This document shows, in pieces, positions 40,606 to 59,716 of a stretch of DNA of 64,000 bases (its first letter is position 1; each line of letters begins with the position of its first letter). Origin of the DNA: Eutreptiella sp. 'Long Island Sound 2002' (lineage: Eukaryota > Protista > Euglenida); the NCBI GenBank assembly GCA_964036045.1, contig OZ038378.1, positions 200,384,001 through 200,448,000 of the forward strand, in the 5' to 3' direction. The translations under genes were made by a program, and so were the position numbers. Below the pieces are notes generated by a model. The model saw only the letters and a list, made by a program, of their open reading frames with translations. It was not told the DNA's origin and searched no databases.

Positions 40606-41256
40606 CTGGCAGAGACAAAGATCCACATGCCTACAACGATACTTGTGCTGTGTCGCCCCCCTGGCATCGAGGTGCACTACCCATTTAATGGCGGGATGCC
40701 CAGCCAAGACATGGGCCCGGTACAGAAACTCCTCAGCCTTGTCCTGAGAGAATGAGGTGGCCAGGAACCCTGGAACACGATACACCTTCCCGGGCACATA
40801 AAATGTTTGGTGCTCATCTGACAAGCCACCTCCGCGCCAACAAATCCCATTGGAAGGAAAATTGACAGCACCGGATGGTCGCCTGATGACACATAAGGTG
40901 TTTATACCACGCACAAGGGTGGCCAGATGCCTCATGCCACCTGGTGCATCGGCACGTATGGCCTCATTGATGATGTTGCACAATGCCTTCCCATGTTGAG
41001 AGGAGAGGGGTAAGGGGGAGGTCCACAGACGCTGAGCAGCTGCCGGAACCTCAGTCAGCAGCTCGTCCTTGACCCTAAATGCTTCATTTTGCAATCGCTG
41101 AAAAAAATCTTTGCAATATGAATAATTGATGTCATGCACTTTACAATAGGCAGCTATGACCTCACATACTGCCTCCATCAGTTGATGTTGAAACTCGGGG
41201 GCCTTAGCCTGGTCATACGCCTTTCGGAACTCAGACGTACTCAAGGTACGCAGGGC
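40606..41256 (-). CDS. Second ADP-ribosyltransferase-like exon (helical subdomain plus R and S-T-S motifs), paralogous to the kinase-fused ART
   Basis: Phase-0 acceptor tttcctcag|GCC at 41256. Translation 'ALRTLSTSEFRKAY..LCNIINEAIR..ICWRGGGL..YRVPGFLATS..RCRHV'. Candidate donor CAG|GT at 40606. The catalytic ExE was not found. Confidence 0.7.
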
Positions 41257-42111
41257 CTGAGGAAAAGCAAAGGTGTTTACGTTGTCAAAGTCTGTGCTCC
41301 AAACGGTTGGAGTGGGGTCGCCCGGCTGTTGAGGCTTCCAGAAAAGCATTCGGCCTTCTCAGGGACATTGAGGGTAGAGGACCCGAGAGAGGGGTTAAGA
41401 AGCTGCTCACCACTGCCAGCAAAAAAGGCACTCCGCAGTGGACGAAGTGTGAATACTCTGCGCGAAGATATTTCTGCAATGCACTACCGGCAAGTCACGG
41501 GTTGCTGAGCTAGCACCCATGGCCTTGTGTGACATTCGCGTTGCTGGTTGTGGTGAGCACCCCCCAGCCTGGGGTCTTCGTGATGACCGCTTAACGGGCA
41601 CTGATTAGTGGAGGTTATGGGCAGCAGTTGCAGGGATGCAGGCAGGCTAAAGTAACACAGGGCTGTCTGTGTCGCTTTGTGAGGGCAAGTGGGGCCTACG
41701 ACAGGGGAGAGCGGGGGGGGTAGGCATGCAAACATGAACTAGGGCTACACGCAAGCGTTGAGTGAAATTGGGTGCAGCAGGGCGGGGGTTTGCAGAAATT
41801 CAGGTATAATCCAGGGCTGTGAGCAGGCACTGAGTGTGAGCAAGATGGGGTACGGCTAGGACAGGTGGGGTGTAACCAGGAGTAGGGGTGCAGGAATGGC
41901 AGGCGAATTTGGGGGTGGGTGCATGAGGTCCAAACTCCGTGACCTTCCAGAGTATTGCATGATGGAATGATGTTGTGTTCCTGATGTTGGTAGTGTAGCA
42001 AACCCATCACACATCCAAAGCGACGAATCTCGCCTCCAAATGGATGTGCACCAGCCCACAAACCACAAATGTCAAGCCACAGCAACAACACAAAGGTGAA
42101 CAGAAACAAAA

Positions 42112-43133: not shown

Positions 43134-45134
43134 TCAAGCCCAGGGGGCGAGAGGCAAATTTTCTGGTGCCCTCTGATTGTCGAATTCTGCCCTCAAAACC
43201 ACCGTGTGTGGCTTCTGAATGGTGGGTGCATCTTGCCACTCAACGGCCTCCACCGTGAAGGCCGAGTAGGGCGCAAAGAGGAACTCATTCTCGACTGCCA
43301 CGTTAGGGTTCGGTCCGAGGGAGCCATCGTGGATTGATATGAAATTGACATGTTTGCATCCCCGTGGGTCCAGCTTAATGGTCCACAAGACTTTATCCTC
43401 TTGCTGGCGCTCCATGAACTTCTTCGTCACCTGGATTTGGTCGGAAGTGGATAAAAACATCGGGACACGGTATTGCTTGCCTTGGACAAAGAAATGGCGG
43501 TGACGTTCAGGGAGCCCACCACCACGAAAGACTGTATTGTCCTTTGGCCACAAGATGGGCGCAGCTTCAGGTGCACGCCGCGTCACACAGAAGGTGTTAA
43601 TAGCACGGGTAATGGTCACGGCATGGATCACCTCATCCATCCTGAGCGCTTCATTGAGGATGCTGCACAATTCTCGCCCTTGAAAGGCTTCTGCAGTTGT
43701 GTACATGCGCATTGCACAGCACTTCAGTTTGTCTGCGTCTATCAGCTCATCAAGACCACCCGCCGTGAATGCAAGTCGCTGTACTTTTGCAAAATACTCA
43801 TCGGCCGCAGCGAGGTCATGGCCATGGCGCTGTGCAAACTGCCCGATCAAGGAACGGACACTCTCCATCAGCTCCGCTTGGCGAAGTGGGATGGACTCCG
43901 TGCGTGTAACGAGGATGCTGTACAATTTTTTGAACTGGCTCGTCCCGAAAGTGCGCAATGCCGACAACAATGGCGCCTTTACATCTGCGAAAGATGGCCT
44001 GTCATCGGGATTCTGGGCCCAGCACTCTCTCATGACATGGACAAGCAGAGCATTACTACTCTCTGGCGAAACATCTGGCCGCTTTTGAGCAACATATACT
44101 GCCTTCATCACCGCTGCCTCATTCTTTCCTTCCCATGGCCTGCTTCCATGCAGCAGTTCCCAGAGGATTATGGCATAGGAATAGACCTCGCTTTTCGGGC
44201 CGAATTCGTTATCGTACTGTTCTGGGGCCTTGTAAGCAAGAGTTCCTGCTGCAGCACGCATTGTGTGTCTCGTCGTGCTGATGTTGGGATTGACTGCAAG
44301 ACCAAAATCAGTAATCTTTGGTGTACAACAGGGACCATACAGGAGGACGTTGTCGCTCTTGAGGTCATGATGGAGAGTAGGCCCATTGGAATGAAGGAAA
44401 GCCATACCTTCAGCAATGCCAGTCGCCAGCTGCAGCTGCAAGAGCTCGTCATATAAGACTTTGGAGCGGTCGTGGTCGAGCAGCGCACGTAGTGAACCGG
44501 CTGGGGCAAGTTCCATGAGAAGACCAATCGAAGTGGGATCGTCGAGAACCACGCCGCATTGCTGCACGATGTTATCATGTGTGAGGCTCTGCAGCACTCG
44601 AAACTCGCGGCGTATGGAAGCCACAAGTTCTGCGTGCTCCGTTTCGGAAACGCCACCGAGGTTCACCTGCTTGAATGCCAACTGTTTATTGTTGAGCGTC
44701 ACTTCGTAAACAATGGCGTGCGAGCCCCTGCCTATCCTCTTTAGGACCTTGAGCGTTGCAGAGGGCACCTCAAAATCAGAGGCATTGAATTTGATGTGAC
44801 GCTGAGCTAACTGTCGGAGGGCCTCGACGTTCTGTGCCGCTCCCGGGCCAAAAGCTGCCTGCAGCGTGTCGACGCTGGTGTCCACAATGTCAGAGAGGTT
44901 AAGGATGCCTAAATCGAGGAGCGGGAGGGGAGAAAGGTCCAACTTCTGAAGTAAGGACAACAGGGTCTTGTCGAGCTTGCGTTTGGCAGCCAGCATCTTC
45001 TCGGCAACATCGGTGATCGTGATATTACCGTCCATCTGAAGCGCTTGCAGCAACACGAACTCCAGAATGTCTGCATTGACCTCCAACAGAGGCTGCTGGA
45101 GCATCGACTGCAGCTGTTGGCTGACAAGGGAACC
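43134..45134 (-). CDS. Terminal exon encoding a TKL-like non-RD protein kinase fused to an R-S-E mono-ADP-ribosyltransferase
   Basis: Kinase: IGRGSHAIVY, LAFK, RREF, LHHDLKSDN, ITDFG, GTLAYKAPE, EVYSY, DRPSF. ART: VFRG, FLSTS, ENEFLF. Phase-0 acceptor tttccag|GGT at 45134; stop TGA at 43134-36. Confidence 0.9.
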   Translation of the reverse strand, partial: GSLVSQQLQSMLQQPLLEVNADILEFVLLQALQMDGNITITDVAEKMLAAKRKLDKTLLSLLQKLDLSPLPLLDLGILNLSDIVDTSVDTLQAAFGPGAAQNVEALRQLAQRHIKFNASDFEVPSATLKVLKRIGRGSHAIVYEVTLNNKQLAFKQVNLGGVSETEHAELVASIRREFRVLQSLTHDNIVQQCGVVLDDPTSIGLLMELAPAGSLRALLDHDRSKVLYDELLQLQLATGIAEGMAFLHSNGPTLHHDLKSDNVLLYGPCCTPKITDFGLAVNPNISTTRHTMRAAAGTLAYKAPEQYDNEFGPKSEVYSYAIILWELLHGSRPWEGKNEAAVMKAVYVAQKRPDVSPESSNALLVHVMRECWAQNPDDRPSFADVKAPLLSALRTFGTSQFKKLYSILVTRTESIPLRQAELMESVRSLIGQFAQRHGHDLAAADEYFAKVQRLAFTAGGLDELIDADKLKCCAMRMYTTAEAFQGRELCSILNEALRMDEVIHAVTITRAINTFCVTRRAPEAAPILWPKDNTVFRGGGLPERHRHFFVQGKQYRVPMFLSTSDQIQVTKKFMERQQEDKVLWTIKLDPRGCKHVNFISIHDGSLGPNPNVAVENEFLFAPYSAFTVEAVEWQDAPTIQKPHTVVLRAEFDNQRAPENLPLAPWA

Positions 45135-48100
45135 CTGGAAATGATTTAGCAAGGCAAGGAAACCGGGGGTTGGGGGGGGATGAGGCAGGGATGGAGGGAA
45201 GGTAAGGAGAGCAGCCGACGCGTGGAAATGCAGCAAAGGGAGAAAGCACAAACCTAAAATGAGGAGTGAATTGATGAAGAGCCGAAACACGCACAGCAAC
45301 CTCAACAACATCGGGTTCTCAGGCCAACAACGCAAAGCCCTGTTCCAGGCGCATTCATGCGAGGTTTACCTGCAACCCTTCCGCTCCCCATGCACTGCAT
45401 GCCCCTGCATTATGGTCTATTGTTCTGCAGCCCTGATACACATCCACAGTACAAGGAAAAAGGATCCTGCTACCAGGGTACAGTGTCTGCTGTTCATGTC
45501 ACAAGTCTCAACCTGCAGATCAGGTCCACCAACAGGAACGAAAATCCAACCCGTCTACCATCAGTTGTCTGCCAATTTACTTCTGTGGAACGCCATCCAT
45601 CCAAAGCGTTCTCTTGGTTCACAGAGGCGTCGCGGTGGCCACAAACCGGACAACTGTTAGGGCGGAGGGGCTTTCAATGGGGGGTTCCAGCCTCCCCTGA
45701 CCAGGGCCCTCCTTCAAAATCTCAAGAGGCTGGCATTCCACATTCCTACTACAACGGCCTCAGACGTCACTGAAACTGCAAAATCCAGAAATACGCTACT
45801 TTGCAATCAGCGGTGACAGGGTGGATCGGAAACTCCATGGTATTGGGACGTGGTGAACGTTGGCCCCCTACCATTTTGACCCCGCAGGCTTGAATATGGC
45901 CCCTGGGTTCACGTTGGCTGTTTAATGGTCCAACCCTTGGCCTCAACCGCTACCCTCCCCCCAGTCTACTAGGAACTTGAAGCCCTCTCCCCCCCAATCG
46001 AACAGCTTGCAGCCCTTTGGCGAATATTCAAAGCTCTTCAAAGCAATCGACCATTGGCATTGGGGACTTGGTAGTTGCTGCAAAGATGGCGCATGGAGGC
46101 ATGTGGACTGGGCATCCACTGCAGCACCCCGCTTAACAAACCGAGGCTGGCTGTAATTGGATAGCACACCTCAAGCCGTGTCTCCTCCGGTTCTATTCTG
46201 TGCCCTTGCTCTCCGAAATGATCATCTGCAACATTGTAGCAGACATGGACCAGAGGAACCCCTCCCCCTTTTGCAGGATGACTCGTGGCTCAGGCTACAC
46301 CAGCGATTCGGCCAAACAGATGGGGGAGGGGGGTAATTTGGGGTTTCCAGATCCGATGATCAGATGCCCCCCCAAAAAGGCTGCACATTACGCGAGAACA
46401 CGGGCAAAATATGGCCTGTCAGCTTTGGCAAGTATACAAAGTAGAATGTGAAATTGTGGACAAGAGCGGACGCCTCTTTTGTAGAGGTGCAACACACACA
46501 CATTGCCACAGTACCTTGTGTCAAGCTGCGCAAGATTGGATCGCCAGGTGGGGCCAAATTCTTGACGGATGGCGGGACATCATTAACAGTCTACCAGCAG
46601 TGTCGATGCGACCAGTCATTCCACACCAGTTCCAAAGGAGCCAGTCGGACAGGTTGGCAGATCTCAACAGGTCATGCATACGACTGTCTGGTTGCACAGC
46701 TCCTCACTGTGCGCCTTGAAAGCCACGCACATCACAGGGCCGCATTGACATCCCTGGACTCCAAGTTTGAACACATTGCAGCCACTTCTGCCTCAGCAAG
46801 ATATTGAAATGGTCCGAATCCACGGCCAGAGCCAGGCAAATTGGCGGGGTGGCCTGTTTCGGTTATGGGAAAGAAAGACCCCGCGTGTCCCCACACTTGT
46901 ACGCAGACGCTCAGATAGAAGTGATTAGGGGTTCCAGTTGGTGTATGGGTCCAGTTGGTAGTCAGAATTGCATTTTTTCAGCAAGGGCACCGACCACAGG
47001 ACTTGGAGTCCAAAAAAATTGTGCTGCTATGTGGCGTGTGGTACCTGAGTGCCCAATCCCTTGTGCAGGTGTGGGCCCAACGCAGCAAGAGCTGCGGCCA
47101 CAGGACTTGGAGTCCAGGAAAGTGATGCGGGTGCGTGGTATGGTACCCGAGTCCCCGATCATCACTTGCGCAGGTGTGGGCCCAAGTTGCTTGTTCTTGG
47201 AATTGTCGGTGAAAAATGGAAAATCTGGTGGACTGGCACAGGAACTGTCCCGGGGCATGCAAAGGTACGCCCCAGCTGGACATTGTGCCTGCTGCAGGGG
47301 CATAGGGGCTGTAGCAGAAGGGCAGCAGTGAAAATGGAATGATGGTAGTACCTTGGGATGCAGAATGTAGTGAAATGGGTGTGCCCCAGGGAGTAAGAGG
47401 GGGGTAGGGGGAGGCATGGGTATCAACCCCTGCCAGTTATTGGTGCATGCACCAGTACAACCCCCGCCGCAGACAGGGTGCAGCAGAAGGTGGGTACCTG
47501 AAAAGGTACAGGGCACACGGACCACCATCATGATCTTGCTCATTGCATCATTGGAAATGCGGTTGTCTGAGTGCAGAAAAGAGCGCAATCAGGAGGAGGG
47601 GACAGGAGGTTGGTCTGAATTAGGGAACGGGGGACCCCCTTCCGCCTCCTTGGCATTTGAAAAACAACACACAGCACAGGGCAAGAGAAGCCACAGAAGC
47701 ACATCGGCGACACCGGACCTCAATTGAGGACCGTGCAGCAGTTATCACCGACCGAAAATACGCTGAATGGCATCCGCATTGATTGGCTCGATGCTCCTTC
47801 TCACGTTTCCAGTCCCATTTTTCTGCCGTGTAATCATCCATCTGCATTCTTCTGTCGTTCGTTACATCACTTGGTACATTCATGAAACCCCAGTGCCAAA
47901 ACGAACGGGGCACAACGATGCCGAAGCTGGTCACAGGTCGGATCATTTGAGTCTGTTATAATGTGAGTTTTGACGCTGTGTTCACGTCCGTGGTCGACTT
48001 TCTTGCTGCAAGATTAGCAAAACAGCAGCCCACCATTGTTATACAGAACACACACACACACAGTCACACACATAACGGAAAAGGTGAGCGCTGATCCCTA

Positions 48101-51100
48101 ACCCCAGCTTCCCACCCCAGTGCACCTTCCATTCCCTCCTTCCCACTGGCACCCCACAACAACAAAAAGTGCGTGCGGCACAGGCCGCTTCGCTCCGGAA
48201 CCCCTTCGCACCTCAGAACTGCAACTGCCCTGGGCATGACGGACACCTCAGGCTCCAATGCAACAGTGAGGCAGGGCTCTGCAGGGACAGAGGGTGCTGT
48301 GGTCCTGAACAAGGTCGCATGGCGGCAGGAAACCACCAGGTCTGCATCCATTCTGCCCAAGACAACAGCCACAACATACCTCCAAGATCCAATGATGTCA
48401 GTGATTTGCACTGCGGAAGAACAGCGGCCAACTCTTTGGTACCTTCATCCCCGATGCCATTGCCTGCACACATGACGGAGGGGGTGAGAGCACATTTCGT
48501 CGCCCTGGACAATGGGCACACGGAGCGGGAGTCACACACATAACGGAAAAGGTGAGCGCTGATCCCTAACCCCAGCTTCCCACCCCAGTGCACCTTCCAT
48601 TCCCTCCTTCCCACTGGCACCCCACAACAACAAAAAGTGCGTGCGGCACAGGCCGCTTCGCTCCGGAACCCCTTCGCACCTCAGAACTGCAACTGCCCTG
48701 GGCATGACGGACACCTCAGGCTCCAATGCAACAGTGAGGCAGGGCTCTGCAGGGACAGAGGGTGCTGTGGTCCTGAACAAGGTCGCATGGCGGCAGGAAA
48801 CCACCAGGACTGCAGCTGAGGCGTCTGCATCCATTCTGCCCAAGACAACAGCCACAACATACATTCAAGATTCAATGATGTCAGCGATTTGCAATGCGGA
48901 AGAACAGCGGCCAACTCTTTGGTACCTTCATCCCCGATGTGATTATCTGCACACATGACGGAGGGGGTGAGAGCACATTTCGTCGCCCTGGACAATGGGC
49001 ACACGGAGCGGGAGTCACACACATAACGGAAAAGGTGAGCGCTGATCCCTAACCCCAGCTTCCCACCCCAGTGCACCTTCCACTCCCTCCTTCCCACTGG
49101 CACCCCACAACAACAAAAAGTGCGTGCGGCACAGGCCGCTTCGCTCCGGAACCCCTTCGCACCTCAGAACTGCAACTGCCCTGGGCATGACGGACACCTC
49201 AGGCTCCAATGCAACAGTGAGGCAGGGCTCTGCAGGGACAGAGGGTGCTGTGGTCCTGAACAAGGTCGCATGGCGGCAGGAAACCACCAGGTCTGCATCC
49301 ATTCTGCCCAAGACAACAGCCACAACATACCTCGAAGATCCAATGATGTCAGTGATTTGCACTGCGGAAGAACAGCGGCCAACTCTTTGGTACCTTCATC
49401 CCCGATGCGATTATCTGCACACATGACGGAGGGGGTGAGAGCACATTTCGTCGCCCTGGACAATGGGCACACGGAGCGGGAGTCACACACATAACGGAAA
49501 AGGTGAGCGCTGATCCCTAACCCCAGCTTCCCACCCCAGTGCACCTTCCATTCCCTCCTTCCCACTGGCACCCCACAACAACAAAAAGTGCGTGCGGCAC
49601 AGGCCGCTTCGCTCCGGAACCCCTTCGCACCTCAGAACTGCAACTGCCCTGGGCATGACGGACACCTCAGGCTCCAATGCAACAGTGAGGCAGGGCTCTG
49701 CAGGGACAGAGGGTGCTGTGGTCCTGAACAAGGTCGCATGGCGGCAGGAAACCACCAGGACTGCAGCTGAGGCGTCTGCATCCATTCTGCCCAAGACAAC
49801 AGCCACAACATACTTCCAAGATCCAATGATGTCAGCGATTTGCACTGCGGAAGAACAGCGGCCAACTCTTTGGTACCTTCATCCCCGATGCGATTATCTG
49901 CACACATGACGGAGGGGGTGAGAGCATATTTCGTCACCGTGGACAATGGGCACACGGAGCGGGAGTCACACACGTAACGGAAAAGGTGAGCGCTGATCCC
50001 TAACCCCAGCTTCCCACCCCAGTGCACCTTCCACTCCCTCCTTCCCACTGGCACCCCACAACAACAAAAAGTGCGTGCGGCACAGGCCGCTTCGCTCCGG
50101 AACCCCTTCGCACCTCAGAACTGCAACTGCCCTGGGCATGACGGACACCTCAGGCTCCAATGCAACAGTGAGGCAGGGCTCTGCAGGGACAGAGGGTGCT
50201 GTGGTCCTGAACAAGGTCGCATGGCGGCAGGAAACCACCAGGACTGCAGCTGAGGCGTCTGCATCCATTCTGCCCAAGACAACAGCCACAACATACTTCG
50301 AAATTTCATTGATGTCAGCGATTTGCAATGCGGAAGAACAGCGGCCAACTCTTTGGTACCTTCAACCCCGATGCCATTGCCTGCACACATGACGGAGGGG
50401 GTGAGAGCATATTTCGTCACCTGGGCAATGGGCACACGGAGCGGGAGTCACACACATAACGGAAAAGGTGAGCGCTGATCCCTAACCCCAGCTTCCCACC
50501 CCAGTGCACCTTCCATTCCCTCCTTCCCACTGGCACCCCACAACAACAAAAAGTGCGTGCGGCACAGGCCGCTTCGCTCCGGAACCCCTTCGCACCTCAG
50601 AACTGCAACTGCCCTGGGCATGACGGACACCTCAGGCTCCAATGCAACAGTGAGGCAGGGCTCTGCAGGGACAGAGGGTGCTGTGGTCCTGAACAAGGTC
50701 GCATGGCGGCAGGAAACCACCAGGACTGCAGCTGAGGCGTCTGCATCCATTCTGCCCAAGACAACAGCCACAACATACCTCCAAGATCCAATGATGTCAG
50801 CGATTTGCACTGCGGAAGAACAGCGGCCAACTCTTTGGTACCTTCAACCCCGATGCGATTGCCTGCACACATGACGGAGGGGGTGAGAGCACATTTCGTC
50901 GCCCTGGACAATGGGCACACGGAGCGGGAGTCACACACGTAACGGAAAAGGTGAGCGCTGATCCCTAACCCCAGCTTCCCACCCCAGTGCACCTTCCATT
51001 CCCTACTTCCCACTGGCACCCCACAACAATTAAAAGTGCGTGCGGCACAGGCCGCTTCGCTCCGGAACCCCTTCGCACCTCAGAACTGCAACTGCCCTGG

Positions 51101-54100
51101 GCATGACGGACACCTCAGGCTCCAATGCAACAGTGAGGCAGGGCTCTGCAGGGACAGAGGGTGCTGTGGTCCTGAACAAGGTCGCATGGCGGCAGGAAAC
51201 CACCAGGACTGCAGCTGAGGCGTCTGCATCCATTCTGCCCAAGACAACAGCCACAACATACATCCAAGATTCAATGATGTCAGCAATTTGCACTGCGGAA
51301 GAACAGCGGCCAACTCTTTGGTACCTTCATCCCCGATGTAATTATCTGCACACATGACGGAGGGGGTGAGGGCACATTTCGTCGCCCTGGACAATGGGCG
51401 CACGGAGCGGGAGTTGCACACATAACGGAAAAGGTGAGCGCTGATCCCTAACCCCAGCTTCCCACCCCAGTGCACCTTCCATTCCCTCCTTCCCACTGGC
51501 ACCCCACAACAACAAAAAGTGCGTGCGGCACAGGCCGCTTCGCTCCGGAACCCCTTCGCACCTCAGAACTGCAACTGCCCTGGGCATGACGGACACCTCA
51601 GGCTCCAATGCAACAGTGAGGCAGGGCTCTGCAGGGACAGAGGGTGCTGTGGTCCTGAACAAGGTCGCATGGCGGCAGGAAACCACCAGGACTGCAGCTG
51701 AGGCGTCTGCATCCATTCTGCCCAAGACAACAGCCACAGCATACTTCGAAATTTCATTGATGTCAGCGATTTGCACTGCGGAAGAACAGCGGCCAACTCT
51801 TTGGTACCTTCATCCCCGATGCCATTGCCTGCACACATGACGGAGGGGGTGAGAGCATATTTCGTCGCCCTGGACAATGGGCACACGGAGCGGGAGTCAC
51901 ACACACAACGGAAAAGGTGAGCGCTGATCCCTAACCCCAGCTTCCCACCCCAGTGCACCTTCCATTCCCTCCTTCCCACTGGCACCCCACAACAACAAAA
52001 AGTGCGTGCGGCACAGGCCGCTTCGCTCCGGAACCCCTTCGCACCTCAGAACTGCAACTGCCCTGGGCATGACGGACACCTCAGGCTCCAATGCAACAGT
52101 GAGGCAGGGCTCTGCAGGGACAGAGGGTGCTGTGGTCCTGAACAAGGTCGCATGGCGGCAGGAAACCACCAGGACTGCAGCTGAGGCGTCTGCATCCATT
52201 CTGCCCAGGACAACAGCCACAACATACATTCAAGATCCAATGATGTCAGCGATTTGCACTGCGGAAGAACAGCGGCCAACTCTTTGGTACCTTCAACCCC
52301 GATGCCATTCCCTGCACACATGACGGAGGGGGTGAGAGCACATTTCGTCGCCCTGGACAATGGGCACACGGAGCGGGAGTCACACACATAACGGAAAAGG
52401 TGAGCGCTGATCCCTAACCCCAGCTTCCCACCCCAGTGCACCTTCCATTCCCTCCTTCCCACTGGCACCCCACAACAACAAAAAGTGCGTGCGGCACAGG
52501 CCGCTTCGCTCCGGAACCCCTTCGCACCTCAGAACTGCAACTGCCCTGGGCATGACGGACACGTCAGGCTCCAATGCAACAGTGAGGCAGGGCTCTGCAG
52601 GGACAGAGGGTGCTGTGGTCCTGAACAAGGTCGCATGGCGGCAGGAAACCACCAGGACTGCAGCTGAGGCGTCTGCATCCATTCTGCCCAAGACAACAGC
52701 CACAACATACATCCAAGATCCAATGATGTCAGCGATTTGCACTGCGGAAGAACAGCGGCCAACTCTTTGGTACCTTCATCCCCGATGCGATTATCTGCAC
52801 ACATGACGGAGGGGGTGAGAGCACATTTTGTCACCCTGGACAATGGGCACACGGAGCGGGAGTCACACACATAACGGAAAAGGTGAGCGCTGATCCCTAA
52901 CCCCAGCTTCAGCACCCGCCTCCCCTGACACCCTGCGAGCACAACACTGATGTCCTCCATGGACCGACGGGCGCCTGACTGTGATCGCATGATTGTCTGG
53001 CGTCTGGTCCTGCTTCCCCGCGCGTGCGCTGCGGGACATAGACTTCTGGGCGGGCGGGCGGGCCCTCGCTCTTAAAATTAAAAGAGACTGACATGGGAGA
53101 GATGGAAGGTTCGATGGAGGGGGGGAAGGAGCTGGGGAGGCTGTGTGGGCTGAACCTACTTTGCTTCGTGAGCTACGCAACTAAGGTTCAGCACCCGCCT
53201 CCCCTGACACCCTGCGAGCACAACACTGATGTCCTCCATGGACCGACGGGCGCAGTGTGCTCGCGAATGCGAGCTGGAATTTCGTTGGGACTCTCAGCTT
53301 CTCTCTTCCCCGAAACTCACCCCCCCCCCCCCTCATCGGCCCTCGCCCGCTCTCAGCATCCAGGGGGACCTGGGGAGATACTCCAGACGTTTATAACGCT
53401 GCGGAGTCCCGCTCCACTGTCGGCGTCGCTCTTCTGCGGCTTGTATTGCCGCCTTGCGGGACGGGAGGGACTTTAACCGGCTCATGGGGTCCGCGGGATT
53501 CAGCGCGGACTCGACCCAGAAGGTGCCTATTTGCAGATTGCTCCAGAGTCGGAGCCAGAATATGCGTCGCAGGATTCGTTGCTGGACCGGGCATCCTGCT
53601 GCTGCCCGCATCCCCATAGTTTGGCAGCGGGAGACTTCGCTGTCCGTTCCTACAGTCACTACCTTCCATCCCATATAGACCGCCATTTTGCACGCCATAT
53701 ATACGCCATAGAATTCTGCCTACTGAAGCGTGCGGATCCACTGTGGGCAACGCGACGACCTGTGCAGCGTCGCGCCCACAATGCCCACCCTGAAGCCGCG
53801 TCCCTCCTCAGCCGCATCTGTGAAAAACTGGATTCCGTCTGTGCGTGGGGAGTGCTCTGCTGTGGGATTCTTGGGGCGTTCGGGGGGGTACGTGTGTGCC
53901 ACTGCACTAAAAACCAGCACAGTGCCCAACCCGCGCGCCATGCCTCTTGTGAAAACCCTGGACCCTGCCTCCAGCGCCCTGTAGCTGCCTGCCATAAAAC
54001 AGGAAAGCCCCGCCCCCGGCCGCGACAGCCAGCAGAGCTGCCCCAGCAGCTTGCGGAGGCGCCGCGGCTCCACGGTACCCCGACCCACGGCACGCACCCA

Positions 54101-57100
54101 CGCACGCAGCGCGCTCTGGACTCCACCCTTGGCGTTCTGTATGGTTCTCTGTTTGCTGTCTATATGCTTTCCAATGAAGCTGATGGCACGCACAGGCTTG
54201 GGCTCACTTTTAATGCTAATTATAAAGCCGGCCCGCCGCAGGCGGCTCGTGACTCTGCGGACCGCACTCCTCAGCTCCCTTTTGCTGCCTGCACAGAACA
54301 ATATATCATCAATGTAGACCCAGGCCCTTGCCGAGGTCCCCCGAAGGGCCCCTGCGACGATACTGCGGACCAAGGTCTGGCACACCAGTGGCGAGTAGCG
54401 CCAGCCGAAGGGCAGACGCGTGTACCTGTACGCCCTGCCGTCCGCGGAGCGTAAGACGAAAATGCGGCGCCACAGGCGCGGCAGCTTTATGCTCCAGAAT
54501 GCGTTCTGAATGTCTAATTTCGCCAGCCAGGGGGCTTTACCCCCCCCCACCTCCCCCCTCAGCCAGTCCCTCAGACCCTCAAGGCCTGGCAGCCGGAATT
54601 TCGCCGGGCTGCGCGCGTCGGCCTCATTTATTGGGGTGGCGTCTAAAATCATACGACATTTCTCCCGATTTTTCGGGCGTAAAAACGCTCGGGCGGTGGG
54701 GCGCAGCCTTGTGCGCTTTACCCCCTTCGTATCTGCCCGGATGGCTCGCATCATCAGTGGCAGCTTTGGGCAGCGCGATTCTAACCCCCCCCCCCCCCCC
54801 TGCGACTGGGCGTACACTGCCGCCAGCCCCCGCGGTACGAGCCTGTCCCACAGGGACTGGTGCACTGTGACTTCCCCCGCCTCCCCCAGACCCGCCGCAG
54901 CCGCCCCCTCCGGGATGTCCCCCTCCTCTTCTGATGAGTAATACCCGTCCTCTTCGCCCTCCAAACCCTCTTCCGCCACCCCCCCCAGTGCCGCCTCCAA
55001 AATTGATTTTTCGCCCACCGCTGTGTCCTCGCTTCCCCCCACCAGGGCCCGCTCAGCCTCCAGCAGCCCCAGAACCGCCCCCCTGACCATGTCCTTACGT
55101 CCTGCTTTGACGCCTGGCAGGCGGCTTATTGCCTCTGCCACCCGCCGGTGTCTCGGCAGCACCGCTGGCGGATCCCCCGCGGCCCCGCCCACCGACTTGG
55201 TCTCCGTCTCCGCCTTCCGGCTCCACTGCTCTGGCCGTTGGCTCCTCTCGCCGCTCGACTTGCAGCTGCCTTTGCGCCCTTGGCCTTGCCGTTGAGCGCC
55301 CCGAATGTCGCTGCGCCTTCTGCGGCTTCTCCTTCGGCGACTCCTCGACTTCGACCACCGTGACCCGCGGCGACGTTGTCCGCGTCCTCTTGCGACCCGC
55401 CTCGCTGCCGGCAGCCCCACGCGACCCAGGCCCAGCAGGTCGGATAGCGGGGACTTCGAGCTCGCGCCGCACCCAGCCGGGCCACATGCCGAGCGTGGTG
55501 CCCGCCGCCATCTCCGCTTTTGGGGTCCTGCCATCCCATGCCGGCTGCACCAGGGGTCCCCCACGCACGAAGCTCCACCGCGGGGGCGCCGTGTAGTAGA
55601 TTTGCGCAACCGCCGGCGTCTTCCAGCCCCCCCAGAGCATAATGAAGCGCACCGGGAGGCCGAGACCGTACAGTTGCGCAGCGCCGTATCTGCGGAACGA
55701 GTGCCAGCGCGTATTTTTGTAGCTGCCACCCGGCCTGTCGAGGAGGCCCCGCAGCCCGTCGTGCAGCCCGTCTCGCCCCCGGAACCACGCTGGTCGGTCC
55801 GGGTGATAGCCGTGGAGGGCGCGCAGCCGCGCCAGGAATCCTGCCCATCTCGCCGTCCACGGCCCCATGCTCTGTCGCTGCTCTCCGGCCCGCGACTTCG
55901 TTCCCGTGAAGACCAGCTCCTCTCCGTCGGCGCGGGCGGTGATGGCCTCGCTGGCCCTGAGGCAGTGCGAGCAAGACAGCGCGGCAAGGGCGACGATTTC
56001 CCACTCCGCGGCCGACCCTGCAGCGGCAGCCATGTGTTGTAGTGCGCCCATGCTGGCCCACTCCTTAACTGTCGTCCGTCCTGCCTTTTCGGCAGCCTTT
56101 GCTGCCCCCACCGCGAGGTACCAGTCTCCCGGTCGGACAGTGCGGCGCAGCCACCCCAGTTTTTCGAGTAGTCGCACCGCGGACAGAACCTTTTTGACTG
56201 CGCTTTCTCCCATGCCCTTCTCGACCAGGGAGGCGAGCTCGTCTTCCAGGACCCGTCGCCTGTGGCATCCTGGCTGCATCCTCTCTCTCCTTCTGAGGTG
56301 GCTGAGCGCCTGCAGATACCCCTCGAGGGTCGTGTCGCTGAGCCCTCGGACGACAGATGCGTCGTAGCCGGCTCCCCAGCCCCCACGCAGGGCCTGCCCG
56401 AGCCGCTCGGCGCCATCGGCAATGGGCAGATCCCGCTCTGCGGTTCACCTCGTCCCTTTTCCCCGCGTGCAGCCCCACTCGTCGCGATCAAAATACCAGT
56501 GGGCCTGCCCACAGTCTCCACACTTCGTCTTCGGGGGGTCCGTGCAATCTTCCCACGCTCCCGTGCGCTTGGACTTGAAGTGACGCCTCCCGTTCAGCAG
56601 GGTGAACTCGGTGTTGGCCGCGGAGCCTGTCCCGCGCCAGATCTCGCCTTCCTTGCGGCCCGCTATGCTGCTGCCCGCATGGCGCGCGGTACTCCTCTGC
56701 GGCGATCTACGCCTCCGCCCCCGTGACCTCCCGGAGGATGATGAAGAGCTGCTTGACGTCGTGCCGCTGCCGCTCGTGCTGCTGTCCTCGCTGTCGCTGC
56801 TGCTGTCTTTCCCGGCGCGCCCTTTTCCCTTTCGCTTCCGGTCCTTCTTTCGCTGCCGTCGCGCCTTCTTCTTCTCTTTGCGCCGCTTTTCCTTCATCTT
56901 GGCCTTTAGGTCATCAGCCCCAGTGACGTCACAGTCCAACAGGATCTTCCACACCTTTGCTGCCAGCGGTGGTGGCCCCTCGGCCCCCATCTCCTCGTCC
57001 TCTCGCAGCTGGGATTCCAGGGCCTTGCACAGCTTGATAGTCCACCGGGGCGCTCCCGCCCGCCTGCGCATGCTCCGGACCGCGCGCGTCGTCAGGCGGT

Positions 57101-59104
57101 TCCACTTGTCCCGTTCGCCCCGCTCCTCCTTGCCGTCCTCGTCGTCCGCTCCGATGCCTCCTCCGGCAGGCACCTTCCCCGGCTGCGTACCCGCTGATGG
57201 CCCCGCGTCGACTGTCCCCACGCGGCCGCCGTGATGGTGTCCTCCCGCGGCCGCTCGCTCCAGGTCCTGCAGAGACGCGCAGAGCTCAAAAGCCGCCTCT
57301 GATTGCGGCTGCGCCAACTCCAAATCGGGGACTTCGATGCCCCACGCCAGGCTTAACCCAAACAGGAATGCATCCCTGTAGGCCATAAAATTTTTGCAGA
57401 CCAGGCACACGTTGAGTGTGCGATTGAACAGCAGGGCCAGCTTGGAGGTGTTCAGCCTGGCCGTCTTCGTCCAGAATCGCACCCCCGCGTCGAGTACCCC
57501 ATGCCTGCTCTCGGTGGGCACCTCCGTTGCGCGCCAGTGCTCCCCCATGAGGCTGCACCACGCCCAGTCGAGCACATTTTCGTCTTGGGCCCGCAGCTTT
57601 TCCCACGACCATGCCCCCTCGCCGTCCAGCTGCTCTGTGGTTGACATGTCCCCCTGGCGGCCCTCGCTCTTAAAATTAAAAGAGACTGACATGGGAGAGA
57701 TGGAAGGTTCGATGGAGGGGGGGAAGGAGCTGGGGAGGCTGTGTGGGCTGAACCTACTTTGCTTCGTGAGCTACGCAACTAAGGTTCCCACCCCAGTGCA
57801 CCTTCCATTCCCTCCTTCCCACTGGCACCCCACAACAACAAAAAGTGCGTGCGGCACAGGCCGCTTCGCTCCGGAACCCCTTCGCACCTCAGAACTGCAA
57901 CTGCCCTGGGCATGACGGACACCTCAGGCTCCAATGCAACAGTGAGGCAGGGCTCTGCAGGGACAGAGGGTGCTGTGGTCCTGAACAAGGTCGCATGGCG
58001 GCAGGAAACCACCAGGACTGCAGCTGAGGCGTCTGCATCCATTCTGCCCAAGACAACAGCCACAACATACCTCGAAGATCCAATGATGTCAGCGATTTGC
58101 ACTGCGGAAGAACAGCGGCCAACTCTTTGGTACCTTCATCCCCGATGCCATTGCCTGCACACATGACGGAGGGGGTGAGAGCATATTTCGTCGCCCTGGA
58201 CAATGGGCACACGGAGCGGGAGTCACACACATAACGGAAAAAGTGAGCGCTGATCCCTAACCCCAGCTTCCCACCCCAGTGCACCTTCCATTCCCACTGG
58301 CACCCCACAACAACAAAAAGTGCGTGCGGCACAGGCCGCTTCGCTCCGGAACCCCTTCGCACCTCAGAACTGCAACTGCCCTGGGCATGACGGACACCTC
58401 AGGCTCCAATGCAACAGTGAGGCAGGGCTCTGCAGGGACAGAGGGTGCTGTGGTCCTGAACAAGGTCGCATGGCGGCAGGAAACCACCAGGACTGCAGCT
58501 GAGGCGTCTGCATCCATTCTGCCCAAGACAACAGCCACAACATACATTCAAGATTCAATGATGTCAGCGATTTGCACTGCGGAAGAACAGCGGCCAACTC
58601 TTTGGTACCTTCATCACCCATGCCATTCCCTGCACACATGACGGAGGGGGTGAGAGCACATTTCGTCGCCCTGGACAATGGGCACACGGAGCGGGAGTCA
58701 CACACATAACGGAAAAGGTGAGCGCTGATCCCTAACCCCAGCTTCCCACCCCAGTGCACCTTCCATTCCCACTGGCACCCCACAACAACAAAAAGTGCGT
58801 GCGGCACAGGCCGCTTCGCTCCGGAACCCCTTCGCACCTCAGAACTGCAACTGCCCTGGGCATGACGGACACCTCAGGCTCCAATGCAACAGTGAGGCAG
58901 GGCTCTGCAGGGACAGAGGGTGCTGTGGTCCTGAACAAGGTCGCATGGCGGCAGGAAACCACCAGGACTGCAGCTGAGGCGTCTGCATCCATTCTGCCCA
59001 AGACAACAGCCACAACATACATCCAAGATTCAATGATGTCAGCGATTTGCACTGCGGAAGAACAGCGGCCAACTCTTTGGTACCTTCAACCCCGATGCCA
59101 TTCC
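43134..59104 (-). CDS. Spliced LRR(x13)-kinase-ART gene model; the 5' part is not identified and probably lies right of 59.7 kb
   Basis: 84-nt LRR exons, each flanked by atgtgtgcag| and |gtatg: 59021-59104, 58546-58629, 58071-58154, 52711-52794, 52228-52311, 51745-51828, 51262-51345, 50779-50862, 50297-50380, 49814-49897, 49331-49414, 48863-48946, 48380-48463. Consensus xNxIGDEGTKELAAVLPQCKSLTSLxLx, with no stops after splicing. The join to 46170-46225 and 43134-45134 is inferred from phase. Confidence 0.7.
46170..46225 (-). CDS. Putative 56-nt linker exon joining the LRR array (phase 1) to the kinase exon (phase 0)
   Basis: Acceptor atgttgcag|AT, similar to the LRR acceptor atgtgtgcag, and donor GAG|GTGTGC. 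Encodes '(D)DHFGEQGHRIEPEETRLE', which resembles a final NxIGDEG LRR turn. Phases match on both sides. Confidence 0.5.
48064..52910 (-). repeat. Tandem exon-intron array, left block (10 LRR exons; period 483, 482 or 468 bp)
   Basis: Exon starts are spaced 483, 468, 483, 483, 482, 483, 483, 483, 483 bp. Introns are nearly identical. Confidence 0.97.
53333..55090 (-). CDS. pol: Reverse transcriptase-RNase H with one premature TAG (53720-53722) in RNase H
   Basis: RT: CRMILDA, KLDIQNAFW, LPFGWRYSP, YIDD. RNase H: FTDAA, LQ*AEF, GTDS, NPADPMSR. The ATG lies 4 nt after the YR stop. Confidence 0.92.
55095..56279 (-). CDS. Tyrosine recombinase of the YR retrotransposon
   Basis: Catalytic set: R (CLRASE), K (GTKS), HxxR (WHSFRR), W (WGGWKT), Y (AQIYY). 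Confidence 0.92.
   Translation of the reverse strand: MQPGCHRRRVLEDELASLVEKGMGESAVKKVLSAVRLLEKLGWLRRTVRPGDWYLAVGAAKAAEKAGRTTVKEWASMGALQHMAAAAGSAAEWEIVALAALSCSHCLRASEAITARADGEELVFTGTKSRAGEQRQSMGPWTARWAGFLARLRALHGYHPDRPAWFRGRDGLHDGLRGLLDRPGGSYKNTRWHSFRRYGAAQLYGLGLPVRFIMLWGGWKTPAVAQIYYTAPPRWSFVRGGPLVQPAWDGRTPKAEMAAGTTLGMWPGWVRRELEVPAIRPAGPGSRGAAGSEAGRKRTRTTSPRVTVVEVEESPKEKPQKAQRHSGRSTARPRAQRQLQVERREEPTARAVEPEGGDGDQVGGRGRGGSASGAAETPAGGRGNKPPARRQSRT
56445..57692 (-). CDS. gag: gag-like ORF1 of the YR retrotransposon
   Basis: 415-aa ORF (the likely start could also be ATG 57647) with K/R-rich and S-rich tracts and a C-terminal 'CGDCGQAHW' Cys/His motif. Homologous to 10907..11389. Confidence 0.65.
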   Translation of the reverse strand: MSVSFNFKSEGRQGDMSTTEQLDGEGAWSWEKLRAQDENVLDWAWCSLMGEHWRATEVPTESRHGVLDAGVRFWTKTARLNTSKLALLFNRTLNVCLVCKNFMAYRDAFLFGLSLAWGIEVPDLELAQPQSEAAFELCASLQDLERAAAGGHHHGGRVGTVDAGPSAGTQPGKVPAGGGIGADDEDGKEERGERDKWNRLTTRAVRSMRRRAGAPRWTIKLCKALESQLREDEEMGAEGPPPLAAKVWKILLDCDVTGADDLKAKMKEKRRKEKKKARRQRKKDRKRKGKGRAGKDSSSDSEDSSTSGSGTTSSSSSSSSGRSRGRRRRSPQRSTARHAGSSIAGRKEGEIWRGTGSAANTEFTLLNGRRHFKSKRTGAWEDCTDPPKTKCGDCGQAHWYFDRDEWGCTRGKGTR

Positions 59105-59345
59105 CTGCACACATGACGGAGGGGGTGAGAGCACATTTCGTCGCCCTGGACAATGGGCACACGGAGCGCGAGTCACACACATAACGGAAAAGGTGAGCGC
59201 TGATCCCTAACCCCAGCTTCCCACCCCAGTGCACCTTCCATTCCCTCCTTCCCACTGGCACCCCACAACAACAAAAAGTGCGTGCGGGACAGGCCGCTTC
59301 GCTCCGGAACCCCTTCGCACCTCAGAACAGCAACTGCCCTGGGCA
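57788..59345 (-). repeat. Tandem exon-intron array, right block (3 LRR exons; period 475 bp)
   Basis: Same unit; two introns carry an 8-bp deletion. The spacing 52711 to 58071 equals 483 plus the 4877-bp insertion. Confidence 0.97.
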
Positions 59346-59716
59346 TGACGGATACCTCAGACCGCAACGCTCAGTTGCCTAACTTCCAACAAAACAAACC
59401 CAGTAAAGAAACACATACCACAGAAAGGCGCTTTTTTGGTGAACTGATTCAATTGGGCAAATTTGTCCTTCCATGACATTATGACAAGATCAACAAAAGT
59501 AAAATCTTCGACAAAGAGCACACATTATTCTAGCCATATCAACTGACGTTGGTGTTCAGGGTTAAAACAAGTACTGTAAGGGCAAGCCCCAAGAAGGTCG
59601 GCTGTGGGCGATAGATTGGCAAAATTACCATAAGCTGCTATGACAGGTGGGCATCATTTAGGGAACACTGAATCTGTGCTGATACCTATTGTTGGGACTT
59701 TGACTTTGGTGCGTAG
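59311..59716. repeat. Dispersed repeat homologous to 35131..37492 but with a single copy of the 150-bp satellite unit
   Basis: Both loci share the left flank 'cacctcagaacagcaactgccctgggcatgac..ccttccatgacatta' and the right flank 'taagctgct..gggaacactgaatctgtgctgatacctatt..aggactgtgga'. Confidence 0.92.

Follow-up and report, generated by a model that had tools for sequence, protein, structure and literature searches.

The window, the whole stretch of 64,000 nucleotides of DNA analysed here, contains an array of variable leucine-rich repeat (LRR) exons together with an exon that encodes a protein kinase followed by an ADP-ribosyltransferase (ART). The presence of both at one locus makes an intracellular sensor-effector plausible, and we give about even odds to the reading that a single minus-strand gene (59479 to 43134) specifies a soluble cytosolic sensor-kinase-ART protein whose enzymatic C-terminus is activated by a ligand. 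Such a gene, of 15-17 exons, would encode about 1,070-1,110 aa in the order short N-terminal exon, 13 (probably 14) RI-type LRRs, linker and helical region, kinase and ART. The LRR horseshoe would be the sensing part, by means of concave-face residues that differ between repeats. Once a ligand is bound, the enzymatic C-terminus would be released or activated; the ART would then move ADP-ribose from NAD+ onto an arginine of a cellular or invader protein, and the kinase would act as a co-effector or a switch. By analogy with known systems, we infer both this logic of ligand sensing and activation and a possible immune or cell-death role (NLR- or abortive-infection-like).

The putative sensor is encoded by 13 minus-strand LRR exons that span 59104 to 48380, each of 84 nt, phase 1/1 and 28 aa:

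59104-59021, 58629-58546, 58154-58071, 52794-52711, 52311-52228, minus strand: LRR exons 1-5, 84 nt each
51828-51745, 51345-51262, 50862-50779, 50380-50297, 49897-49814, minus strand: LRR exons 6-10, 84 nt each
49414-49331, 48946-48863, 48463-48380, minus strand: LRR exons 11-13, 84 nt each

All are flanked by the same intact splice sites (tgtgtgcag/ before and /gtatg after, in 13/13) and, when spliced in silico, they yield an unbroken 28-aa repeat, xNxIGxEGTKELAAVLPQCKSLTSLxLx. One exon corresponds to one RI-type LRR, and the 13 repeats have the LRR_6 consensus LxxLxLxxNxIGxxGaxxLaxxL, whose period is 28-29 aa. Single exons match LRR_6 in Pfam (PF13516, RI type) with E values of 9e-4 to 0.08, below the gathering score and as two half-matches, as is expected where exon borders split the repeat. 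The tandem units measure 483/475 bp and are 96-97% alike, the intervening introns (384-399 nt) are near-identical, and there is no stop and no frameshift in the 13 exons despite 17 variable sites. A preliminary description of this DNA had reported 13 spliceable RI-type LRR exons, and the phases, splice sites and LRR_6 matches bear this out.

It had further described the array as diversifying, a view with which three measures agree: the pi of the LRR exons is 0.0775 versus 0.010 for the introns (about 7-8-fold higher in the exons), variable columns amount to 17/84 in exons versus 18/399 in introns (Fisher p 9e-6), and the pN/pS of the exons is 3.16. The variable residues are those at positions 26, 28, the intron-split codon and 3 of the repeat, which are the x positions of LxLxxNx and are predicted to lie on the concave face in contact with a ligand. 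Everything outside these positions is near-uniform among the repeats, introns included (homogenised to about 99%). LRR immune receptors classically show elevated exon diversity focused on concave-face positions (PMC11378527 for brown-algal ROCO), and the diversity of this array is of the kind that selection for binding to changing ligands would, by analogy, be expected to produce on a surface.

Candidate exons lie on both sides of the array, and a retrotransposon lies within it:

59419..59479, minus strand: candidate first coding exon, ATG 59479-59477, 20 codons + 1 nt
52911..57815, minus strand: tyrosine-recombinase (DIRS-like) retrotransposon within intron 3 (58070-52795) and oriented like the gene
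47498..47566, minus strand: candidate terminal LRR exon, 69 nt, phase 1/1, encoding (D)NRISNDAMSKIMMVVRVPCTFS

The first of these encodes MSWKDKFAQLNQFTKKAPFC and ends in a phase-1 donor (G/gtatgtg). Its ATG, open frame and donor are kept in four paralogous arrays, the changes within KDKFAQLNQFTK are mostly synonymous among the four loci, and the exon is, on this comparison, under purifying selection across paralogues. Its product has no signal peptide and begins with a hydrophilic N-terminus, MSWKDKFAQLNQ. The motif of the candidate terminal LRR exon resembles DNWIGDVSLKALDVLL, with which the kinase-ART exon of the relative L031 begins at a phase-1 acceptor; Pfam gave no match to this exon alone, and without the donor at 47498 its frame continues to a stop at 46962. 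The retrotransposon (4.9 kb; RVT_1 at E 9e-17 and a weak Phage_integrase match at E 4e-4, under the Pfam cut-off) touches no LRR exon. Its edges are marked by interruptions of the TRF array at 52910 and 57816, and intron 3 measures 5276 nt versus 399 nt for the other introns. Being sense-oriented, the element could end transcripts early.

The predicted enzymatic functions are encoded downstream, where a further ART-module copy also occurs:

43134..45134, minus strand: terminal coding exon, from the acceptor tttccag/GGT to the stop, with helical N-terminal region, kinase and ART
43974..44750, minus strand: protein kinase domain, TKL group, non-RD, Pfam E 2.7e-43
43137..43943, minus strand: C-terminal ART module, 269 aa, helical lobe and R-S-ExE mono-ADP-ribosyltransferase core
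VFRGGG 43532-43515, FLSTS 43457-43443 and ENE 43292-43284, minus strand: ART motifs (R, S-T-S, Glu-x-Glu)
40522..41349, minus strand: second ART-module copy, 275-aa open frame, 1.8 kb downstream of the kinase-ART exon

Similarity to relatives begins near 45134, at an acceptor-like site. The Pfam family PK_Tyr_Ser-Thr matches ORF residues 196-454, and the catalytic loop HHDLKSDN (44372-44349), which has His and not Arg before the catalytic Asp and is therefore non-RD, is accompanied by the G-loop, the Lys of LAFK, the Glu of RREF, DFG (44309-44301) and APE (44228-44220). These motifs are conserved in 7 relatives, with LHHDLK and the loop Asn invariant in 8 sequences. Judged by its motifs the kinase looks catalytically complete, and the full non-RD kinase recognised earlier by its loop is confirmed by the Pfam match and these motifs. 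The solved kinases nearest to it are CTR1, MLK4, MLK1 and RIPK2, among named relatives a transcript of Pleurochrysis carterae comes closest to the kinase-ART, and close relatives of the kinase carry C-termini of TIR_2, PARP or protease + U-box type (precomputed Pfam). A non-RD catalytic loop is found in many innate-immune kinases.

Its C-terminal neighbour is, on the evidence of a profile match and a structural model, an R-S-ExE mono-ADP-ribosyltransferase of toxin type. A profile of 78 sequences, in which R140, E220 and L222 are invariant and S167 and E218 at least 90% conserved (the catalytic Arg is also invariant among 71 relatives), matches the Vis toxin 4xzj at E 9e-7 and aligns R with YRG, S-T-S with STS and ENE with E-A-E. 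The model used was the alignment-based AF2 one (pLDDT 92, pTM 0.89; single-sequence AF2 gave pLDDT 38). Foldseek placed R-S-E mono-ARTs on top (Vis E 1e-9), VIA-align gave Z values of 14.0 for Tre1, 13.6 for Vis, 13.1 for ExoS, 13.1 for XopAI and 11.6 for ART2.2, and the SidE mART 5zq5_C can be superposed on the module, helical lobe included (Z 10.7, 216 residues). The profile match to Vis, the model and the fold matches uphold the earlier assignment of an R-S-E ART with an ExE motif (ENE). Pfam returned no ART match for the window copy, its ART models match only 3/71 relatives, phmmer of the module against PDB found nothing, and the ART profile had no sequence-level match to SidE/SdeA. The ExE form of R-S-E ARTs is typical of arginine-specific enzymes, and we infer by analogy that the predicted ART may have the same specificity.

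This ART family comprises at least 1,069 clusters at 50% identity, in which the module is found with Ank, Arm, WD40, SAP, myosin, MIB_HERC2 and SidE_PDE domains, the last directly before it in 9/71 long family members. Since the family is fused to many ordinary interaction domains, the module alone is no marker of immunity. The second copy in the window has the R and S motifs and the same starting boundary, ALRTLSTSEF; homology stops after RCRHV, and no ExE segment for it occurs elsewhere in the window. From its sequence it is most likely a truncated copy, complete relatives of which lie on contig C27.

The LRR and kinase-ART parts are, to judge from their sequences, probably fused in one gene. 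Both are on the minus strand, separated by 3.2 kb that contain no other gene, and we treat them as one transcript because of L031 (P0006), a metagenomic relative, 44% identical, that has the same 84-nt phase-1 LRR exons in 285-bp tandem units and whose last LRR reads in-frame into its kinase-ART ORF. How the two parts could be spliced together depends on the following sites:

46170..46225, minus strand: linker exon of the preliminary description, 56 nt, phase 1 to 0
45253..45253, minus strand: alternative phase-1 acceptor, ttcactcctcattttag/GT, inside the open frame

The linker exon is a possible one. Its phase compatibility, claimed earlier, is correct; it is one of 247 stop-free AG..GT stretches with the same phases in 48379-45336, so the phase says nothing by itself, and support beyond chance did not emerge. 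The acceptor at 45253 has 12/14 pyrimidines, the best tract among the acceptors listed, and would join any LRR donor in-frame and directly to the kinase-ART exon. Four alternative full gene models each produce a single intact ORF from ATG to stop (1113 and 1090 aa in models B and B2). The Kyte-Doolittle(19) maximum is 1.21 in models A and A2, in line with the earlier statement that the part then modelled has no transmembrane segment, and 1.6-1.75 at the junction in B and B2. An Atlas search with the region between LRR and kinase gave no usable match.

The source of RNA was one estuary metatranscriptome (X1, depth 2-2.5, which may contain DNA); X2 and X4, whose depth stays even across introns, are DNA, as is X6, which is patchy and of low depth. 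X1 yielded two perfect short contigs that lie within the kinase-ART exon; it had no contig from the 3 kb of putative intron, no read or contig across any LRR-to-kinase junction, and no array transcript unique to the window locus. Among the relatives, L032 has no LRR exons within 10 kb upstream of its stand-alone kinase-ART (P0005), which has its own ATG; L035 has a 2,401-aa Ig-like ORF in place of LRR exons, and the haptophyte transcript P0004 (691 aa) is a kinase-ART without LRR. The closest relative, L033, offers 535 nt of upstream sequence. A metagenome scan returned one further kinase-ART (L044, with no LRR in its 814 nt upstream) and otherwise bacterial kinases. The one-gene claim of the preliminary description is favoured indirectly by the strand, the 3.2-kb gap and the fusion in L031, and is weakened by the lack of a junction in the RNA and by the differing N-termini of the other relatives.

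The locus could alternatively consist of two neighbouring genes, an LRR-only gene ending in or after 47566-46962 and an independent kinase-ART gene starting at ATG 45311 or later and perhaps bearing a hydrophobic anchor at its N-terminus (MLLRLLCVFRLFINSLLILGLCFL); we regard this as possible and somewhat unlikely. It would account for the kinase-ART frame being open from 45335, 67 codons upstream of the acceptor at 45134 with an in-frame ATG included, at the Met of which begins an automatic gene call (P0001, 725 aa) that treats the kinase-ART as a stand-alone gene. It would also fit the stop that the LRR-side frame reaches at 46962 if the donor at 47498 is ignored, the existence of the stand-alone relatives P0005 and P0004, and the missing junction in X1. 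However, no relative has a counterpart of the 67 residues that precede 45134, and those from about 45200 to 45135 are a translated pyrimidine-rich tract that ends in a canonical acceptor. Against two genes there also stand the physical fusion of an LRR to the kinase-ART ORF of L031, the strong phase-1 acceptor at 45253, which fits the phase-1 LRR donors exactly, and the same-strand effector-like ORF downstream of 5/5 arrays in the genome. A silent or decaying locus, in which a recently amplified, satellite-like array that happens to hold an LRR exon was disrupted by a retrotransposon beside an unrelated gene, seems to us very improbable: the 96-97% identity of the units, the inserted element, the adjoining truncated ART copy and the lack of a locus-specific array transcript in X1 would be in its favour, but each of the 13 exons has an open frame and perfect splice sites, their 17 variable sites include no stop or frameshift, the insertion is wholly intronic, and the first exon appears to be under purifying selection across paralogues.

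A fused gene might instead serve a housekeeping or signalling role, with the LRRs as a scaffold (as in LRRK/ROCO or RI-like proteins) and the ART as an endogenous regulatory writer; the differences between exons would then be old repeat-specific residues under purifying selection, and gene conversion would homogenise the rest. The occurrence of the ART module with ordinary partner domains in its many clusters resembles such general regulatory use, the kinase is nearest to MAP3K-type kinases, the protein has no immune switch domain, and concerted evolution alone could produce the low intron diversity. Even so, we find this role unlikely in view of the pN/pS of 3.2, the 7-8-fold exon excess and its focus on four concave-face positions, the death- or defence-type outputs (TIR_2, PARP, protease + U-box) of the close kinase relatives, and the coupling of arrays 85-89% alike to different downstream ORFs.

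The latter arrays are the four paralogues of the same unit in this genome (one of them at C23:18.865-18.877 Mb), each with a same-strand ORF 6.6 to 28.7 kb downstream. These ORFs are ART-like by language-model feature search only: Pfam to E 10 and phmmer against PDB found no match, nor did hhalign with the profile of type 1, and their 'type-2 ART' identity is a lead. Between the flank 48100-45135 and those of the four paralogues there is no similarity at the DNA level, and these arrays therefore cannot confirm linker exons. Arrays so alike with different downstream ORFs suggest, at the level of sequence, a rapid turnover.

If the sensor-kinase-ART reading is extended beyond the window, this genome and related marine algae and protists might possess a germline receptor system of hypervariable LRR arrays with interchangeable ART effector exons, an idea that we advance tentatively and consider rather unlikely. 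It would comprise the kinase and type 1 ART here and the second ART-like ORF at the four paralogous arrays, about 30 stand-alone ART exon copies would serve as cassettes, and alternative use of LRR exons could multiply specificities. Were it true, recognition of a virus or bacterium would lead to ADP-ribosylation of an essential target and hence to cell arrest or death, a logic like that of NLRs or abortive infection but with no STAND ATPase. To our knowledge, the innate immunity of marine algae and protists, whose viruses and bacteria shape blooms, is almost unknown in molecular terms. If the fusion is real, the locus would offer a candidate that combines a diversifying sensor with two assayable outputs, phosphotransfer and NAD+-dependent ADP-ribosylation. 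Its ART is also one of a large and uncharacterised family of C-terminal R-S-ExE modules in eukaryotes. Some members of the family have the PDE-then-ART order known until now from Legionella SidE effectors, which raises the question of the origin of this chemistry.

The predicted domain architecture is new and its parts are known. The preliminary description knew of no characterised gene with this architecture, and a search of the open-access literature agrees, having revealed no paper that combines ART, LRR, kinase and haptophyte, and nothing that links SdeA to haptophytes or dinoflagellates. In comparison with an NLR, the central NACHT or NB-ARC ATPase is absent (Pfam on the 733-aa frame gave kinase families only, and the other exons are LRRs and short linkers), and the protein is thus not an NLR, although it may work like one. 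It shares a TKL-group kinase, an LRR sensor and a non-RD loop with LRRK/ROCO proteins, Xa21/FLS2-type LRR-RLKs and IRAK/RIPK; unlike these, it has no transmembrane segment, signal peptide, ROC-COR (no Pfam match to a ROC GTPase or COR in the 733-aa frame) or death domain, and has an additional ART. With its Arg, Ser-Thr-Ser and Glu-x-Glu and the same fold (Z 11-14), the ART is like those of the C3/ExoS/Vis/Tre1 type and ART2.2, yet unlike secreted bacterial toxins or ecto-ARTs it forms the C-terminus of a large eukaryotic protein that has several domains and is predicted to be cytosolic. The PDE-then-ART order of 9/71 relatives of the module is like that of Legionella SidE (PDE-mART), whereas the window protein has a kinase before its ART and, by Pfam, no PDE domain; ubiquitin as its target is pure speculation.

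Among eukaryotic proteins, the LRRC9-like LRR-ART-LRR architecture has been proposed to be an ancient defence-like sensor-effector (PMC7955679). According to the same source, the ART-like domain of LRRC9 lies between two LRR blocks, has no classical active site and is likely a pseudoenzyme (PMC7955679). Both proteins combine LRRs with an ART fold, whereas the ART of the window is C-terminal with a complete R-S-ExE and is accompanied by a kinase. The brown-algal LRR-ROCO candidate receptors (Ectocarpus, Saccharina; Zambounis et al. 2012 in PMC11378527) have one LRR per exon with symmetric phases, which permit the exons to be freely duplicated or shuffled, and positive selection at the x positions of the LxLxxN strand (PMC11378527). 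Their exons, as given there, are of 72 nt, phase 2 and 23-24 aa, in contrast to the 84 nt, phase 1 and RI-type 28 aa of the window; the proposed gene of the window also has no ROC-COR, its output would be a TKL kinase and an ART, and its introns are homogenised to about 99%. The brown-algal LRR-ROCO genes and the proposed window gene nonetheless have in common one LRR per exon, symmetric phases, selection at the x positions, a cytosolic location, an enzymatic output and a proposed role in immunity.

On the minus strand between positions 43134 and 59479 of the window lie three components: a tandem array of LRR exons, a retrotransposon and a 733-codon open frame that encodes a kinase followed by a putative ART. 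From known parts the locus would appear to have assembled a new domain architecture with a strong signature of diversification, although both the junction of its parts and its function are putative. A first exon and, downstream of the array, a terminal LRR exon are now added to the gene model, as follows.

59479-59419, minus strand: first exon with ATG, upstream of the array, phase-1 donor, encoding MSWKDKFAQLNQFTKKAPFC
48062-52910 and 57816-59360, minus strand: tandem array of 483/475-bp units, 96-97% alike
59104-59021 (first) to 48463-48380 (last), minus strand: 13 LRR exons, all located
52911-57815, minus strand (the gene's orientation): retrotransposon that matches RVT_1 and, weakly and under the Pfam cut-off, a Phage_integrase-like (tyrosine recombinase) domain
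47566-47498, minus strand: terminal LRR exon downstream of the array, 69 nt, phase 1/1, encoding DNRISNDAMSKIMMVV…
45335-43134, minus strand: 733-codon open frame on the same strand as the array, 3.2 kb downstream
41349-40522, minus strand: ART copy 1.8 kb downstream, R and S motifs kept

Each array unit contains a single 84-nt exon with intact borders (tgtgtgcag before it, gtatg after it). Because each exon opens with the last two bases of one split codon and closes with the first base of the next, any of them can follow any other, and the 13 spliced together give an unbroken 13 x 28-aa repeat (xNxIGxEGTKELAAVLPQCKSLTSLxLx). Its sequence assigns this repeat to the ribonuclease-inhibitor (RI) type, and single exons match Pfam LRR_6 as two half-matches (E about 1e-3), confirming the 13 spliceable RI-type exons of the preliminary description. 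Since the first exon, its ATG and its donor are kept in all four paralogous arrays of the genome, with mostly synonymous differences within KDKFAQLNQFTK, we regard it as a real coding exon; no signal peptide was found in it. At the other end, exon 47566-47498 reads as a degenerate last LRR. The sole interruption of the array falls within intron 3 (5,276 nt versus 399 nt), where the retrotransposon damages no exon; on either side of it the array is otherwise normal, which points to a recent insertion. Elsewhere in the genome there may be an intronless version of a similar array, as a 424-432-nt genomic contig (sequencing runs X2 and X6) has LRR-exon-like sequence at 84-nt spacing. Upstream of the gene, a frame of 92 codons that contains a (TG)n tract occurs in two near-identical minus-strand copies (60621-60899 and 61202-61480, 581-bp spacing), an unrelated local duplication or repeat.

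The pattern of variation bears out the earlier claim that the array is diversifying. Pairwise diversity is 0.0775 among the 13 exons versus 0.010 among the eleven complete introns, with 17/84 variable columns in the exons versus 18/399 in the introns (Fisher p 9e-6); over the 27 whole codons of the exon pN is 0.068 and pS 0.022, a ratio of 3.2. None of the 17 variable exon sites creates a stop codon. The variable residues, at repeat positions 26 (D/N/K), 28 (G/E/R) and 3 (G/R/Y/H) and at the split codon (W/C/D/N/G), correspond to the x positions of LxLxxNx; in LRR proteins, these positions line the concave sheet. Such exon-biased diversity calls for positive selection or else for selective retention in the face of gene conversion.

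The kinase (residues 196-454 of the frame, Pfam E 2.7e-43) has, as previously described, a full set of catalytic elements: the G-loop GRGSHAIVY, the Lys of LAFK, the Glu of RREF, HHDLKSDN (44372-44349), DFG and APE. It is non-RD, since a His stands before the catalytic Asp, and LHHDLK is invariant in seven relatives. The closest solved kinases are CTR1, MLK1/4 and RIPK2, all of the TKL group. Kinase relatives of 32-44% identity that are without the ART (P0011, P0014, P0015, P0017, P0020, P0022, P0043, P0013) carry instead PARP catalytic, TIR_2, or trypsin and U-box domains (precomputed Pfam), which suggests a single kinase lineage in which the C-terminal effector domain can be exchanged.

The putative ART comprises the last 269 residues of the frame. 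It had no Pfam match, and a single-sequence search gave no PDB match; an exhaustive HMMER search returned 1,069 clusters with E no greater than 1e-3 (605 at 1e-10), and among the 150 best listed matches the match nearly always reaches the protein's C-terminus. In a 78-sequence alignment three columns are invariant, among them the FRG Arg and the second ExE Glu; the STS Ser and the first ExE Glu are conserved in at least 90%. A profile of these sequences matches the arginine-specific Vis toxin (4xzj; E 9e-7), with the R, STS and ExE motifs aligned. The AlphaFold model built with the alignment (pLDDT 92, pTM 0.89) has only R-S-E mono-ARTs as its top Foldseek matches (Vis, SpvB, HopU1, XopAI, VahC, Tre1, C3, ExoS/T, CDTa), and VIA-align Z values are 14.0 for Tre1, 13.6 for Vis, 13.1 for ExoS and XopAI, 11.6 for rat ART2.2 and 10.7 for SidE. 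Conserved motifs, profile and structure therefore uphold the R-S-ExE reading made earlier; from the ExE form we infer that the domain would ADP-ribosylate, and do so on arginine.

Sequence comparison makes it fairly probable that the array and the kinase-ART exon are fused in one gene here, the best indirect support being the contig of P0006. Upstream of this relative (kinase-ART 44% identical) lie 285-bp tandem units, each with an RI-type LRR exon of 84 nt and phase 1/1 whose split codon is exactly that of the window exons; its last LRR (DNWIGDVSLKALDVLL) starts at a phase-1 acceptor and continues as a single ORF through a coiled-coil linker, kinase and ART. The window's 69-nt exon would be the counterpart of that last-LRR segment. 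Several findings speak against the fusion: the automatic call P0001 takes the kinase-ART ORF as a stand-alone gene, separate from the array; P0005, a relative, starts at an ATG of its own and lacks any LRR over 10 kb; P0007 is preceded by a 2,401-aa ORF with a TMEM132-type Ig domain, and the Pleurochrysis transcript P0004 is without LRR. The kinase-ART module is thus paired with N-termini that differ between lineages, LRR being one of them. The 2,401-aa frame (L035:2-7207, plus strand) ends 28 nt before the P0007 kinase-ART ORF, in the same frame, and the two probably form a single gene whose sensor-like N-terminus is a different one.

Within the fused model, the linker exon proposed in the preliminary description (46225-46170) does convert phase 1 to 0, but so do 246 further stop-free AG..GT stretches of the interval, so that it is phase-compatible without being distinctive. 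Also in favour of the fusion, homology to all relatives starts near acceptor 45134, preceded by ~65 pyrimidine-rich nt; the phase-1 acceptor 45253 has the best pyrimidine tract among the acceptors listed and would link any LRR donor straight into the open frame. All four splice combinations built gave a single intact ORF (1,069-1,113 aa). The sole RNA library with window sequence is an estuary metatranscriptome (X1), the remaining runs being DNA. It holds two perfect contigs within the kinase-ART exon, 43609-43759 (151 nt) and 44854-45044 (191 nt), with no contig in the 3 kb separating array and exon or across a junction; as the two match the window at 100% identity, that estuary is home to the organism or to a very close strain. 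X1 also contains LRR-exon-like contigs of 44-62 nt at depths above 1,000, which, being mismatched to the window, are probably derived from different genes or organisms.

A genome-wide paralogue count, as had been suggested, gave 33 matches to the ART module, typically a terminal exon starting at the ALRT… boundary (the kinase/ART border in the window gene), and, in the 2.28-Gb genome, four further arrays of the 475-bp LRR unit, 85-89% identical, with about 13 to 18 units each.

C23:18871114-18877255: paralogous array
C14:51238338-51246856: paralogous array
C20:11137748-11143882: paralogous array
C20:11381180-11389987: paralogous array

Downstream of each, at 6.6, 9.5, 28.6 and 28.7 kb, lies a same-strand ORF of 345-373 aa that a language-model feature search grouped with PF01129/PF03496 ARTs (score 0.96) and in which S-x-S and E-E-E motifs can be seen by eye; neither Pfam nor PDB nor a profile comparison gave a positive result, and an ART identity is a lead only. 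Since a single ancestral locus probably gave rise to all four by copying, they amount to one additional instance rather than four. The copy at 41349-40522, for which no ExE segment was found anywhere in the window, most resembles complete terminal-exon copies on contig C27 and appears to be a truncated ART module. Among 71 ART-family members of at least 400 aa, the N-terminal partner is SidE_PDE directly before the ART in 9, a window-type kinase in 8, ankyrin repeats in 8, Arm, WD40 and SAP in 2 each, and LRR_4, DUF285, MIB_HERC2, myosin head and clathrin in 1 each; Pfam ART itself is matched by 3. Because these partners are so varied, the module is best read as a putative enzymatic cassette of general use at the C-terminus. 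The SidE_PDE domain (PF12252, E down to 7e-35) immediately precedes the ART in P0210, P0221, P0244, P0149 and five more members of the A2 alignment of ART-module relatives, eukaryote-like metagenomic proteins that often have ankyrin, SAP, zinc-finger or myosin domains too. Elsewhere, to our knowledge, PDE followed by mART is the order of the Legionella SidE effectors, and a literature search found no paper mentioning it beyond Legionella.

The immune sensor-kinase-toxin of the preliminary description stands as to its domains and its LRR diversification, and not as to its specific linker; the LRR-kinase junction and the function remain proposals. The immune reading draws on the LRR diversification and on the TIR_2, PARP and trypsin plus U-box domains of the kinase relatives, and not on the ART alone. 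The combination of LRR and TKL kinase is known from LRRK/ROCO proteins and plant receptor kinases. The window protein is not an NLR, being without NACHT/NB-ARC, nor is it a ROCO, a membrane receptor kinase or a SidE; a search of the open-access literature found no description of LRR-kinase-ART or kinase-ART, in agreement with the earlier remark that this architecture was not known from any characterised gene. LRRC9 combines LRRs with an ART-like domain that is central and probably inactive (PMC7955679), whereas the window ART is C-terminal. Mechanistically closest are the brown-algal LRR-ROCO genes, in which every exon encodes a single LRR, phases are symmetric, exons are shuffled and the same strand positions are under positive selection (PMC11378527). 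The window locus has in common with them the LRR-per-exon arrangement, the symmetric phases and the selected strand positions; their exons, however, are 72 nt and phase 2 with a ROC-COR output, and those of the window are 84 nt and phase 1 with a kinase-ART output.
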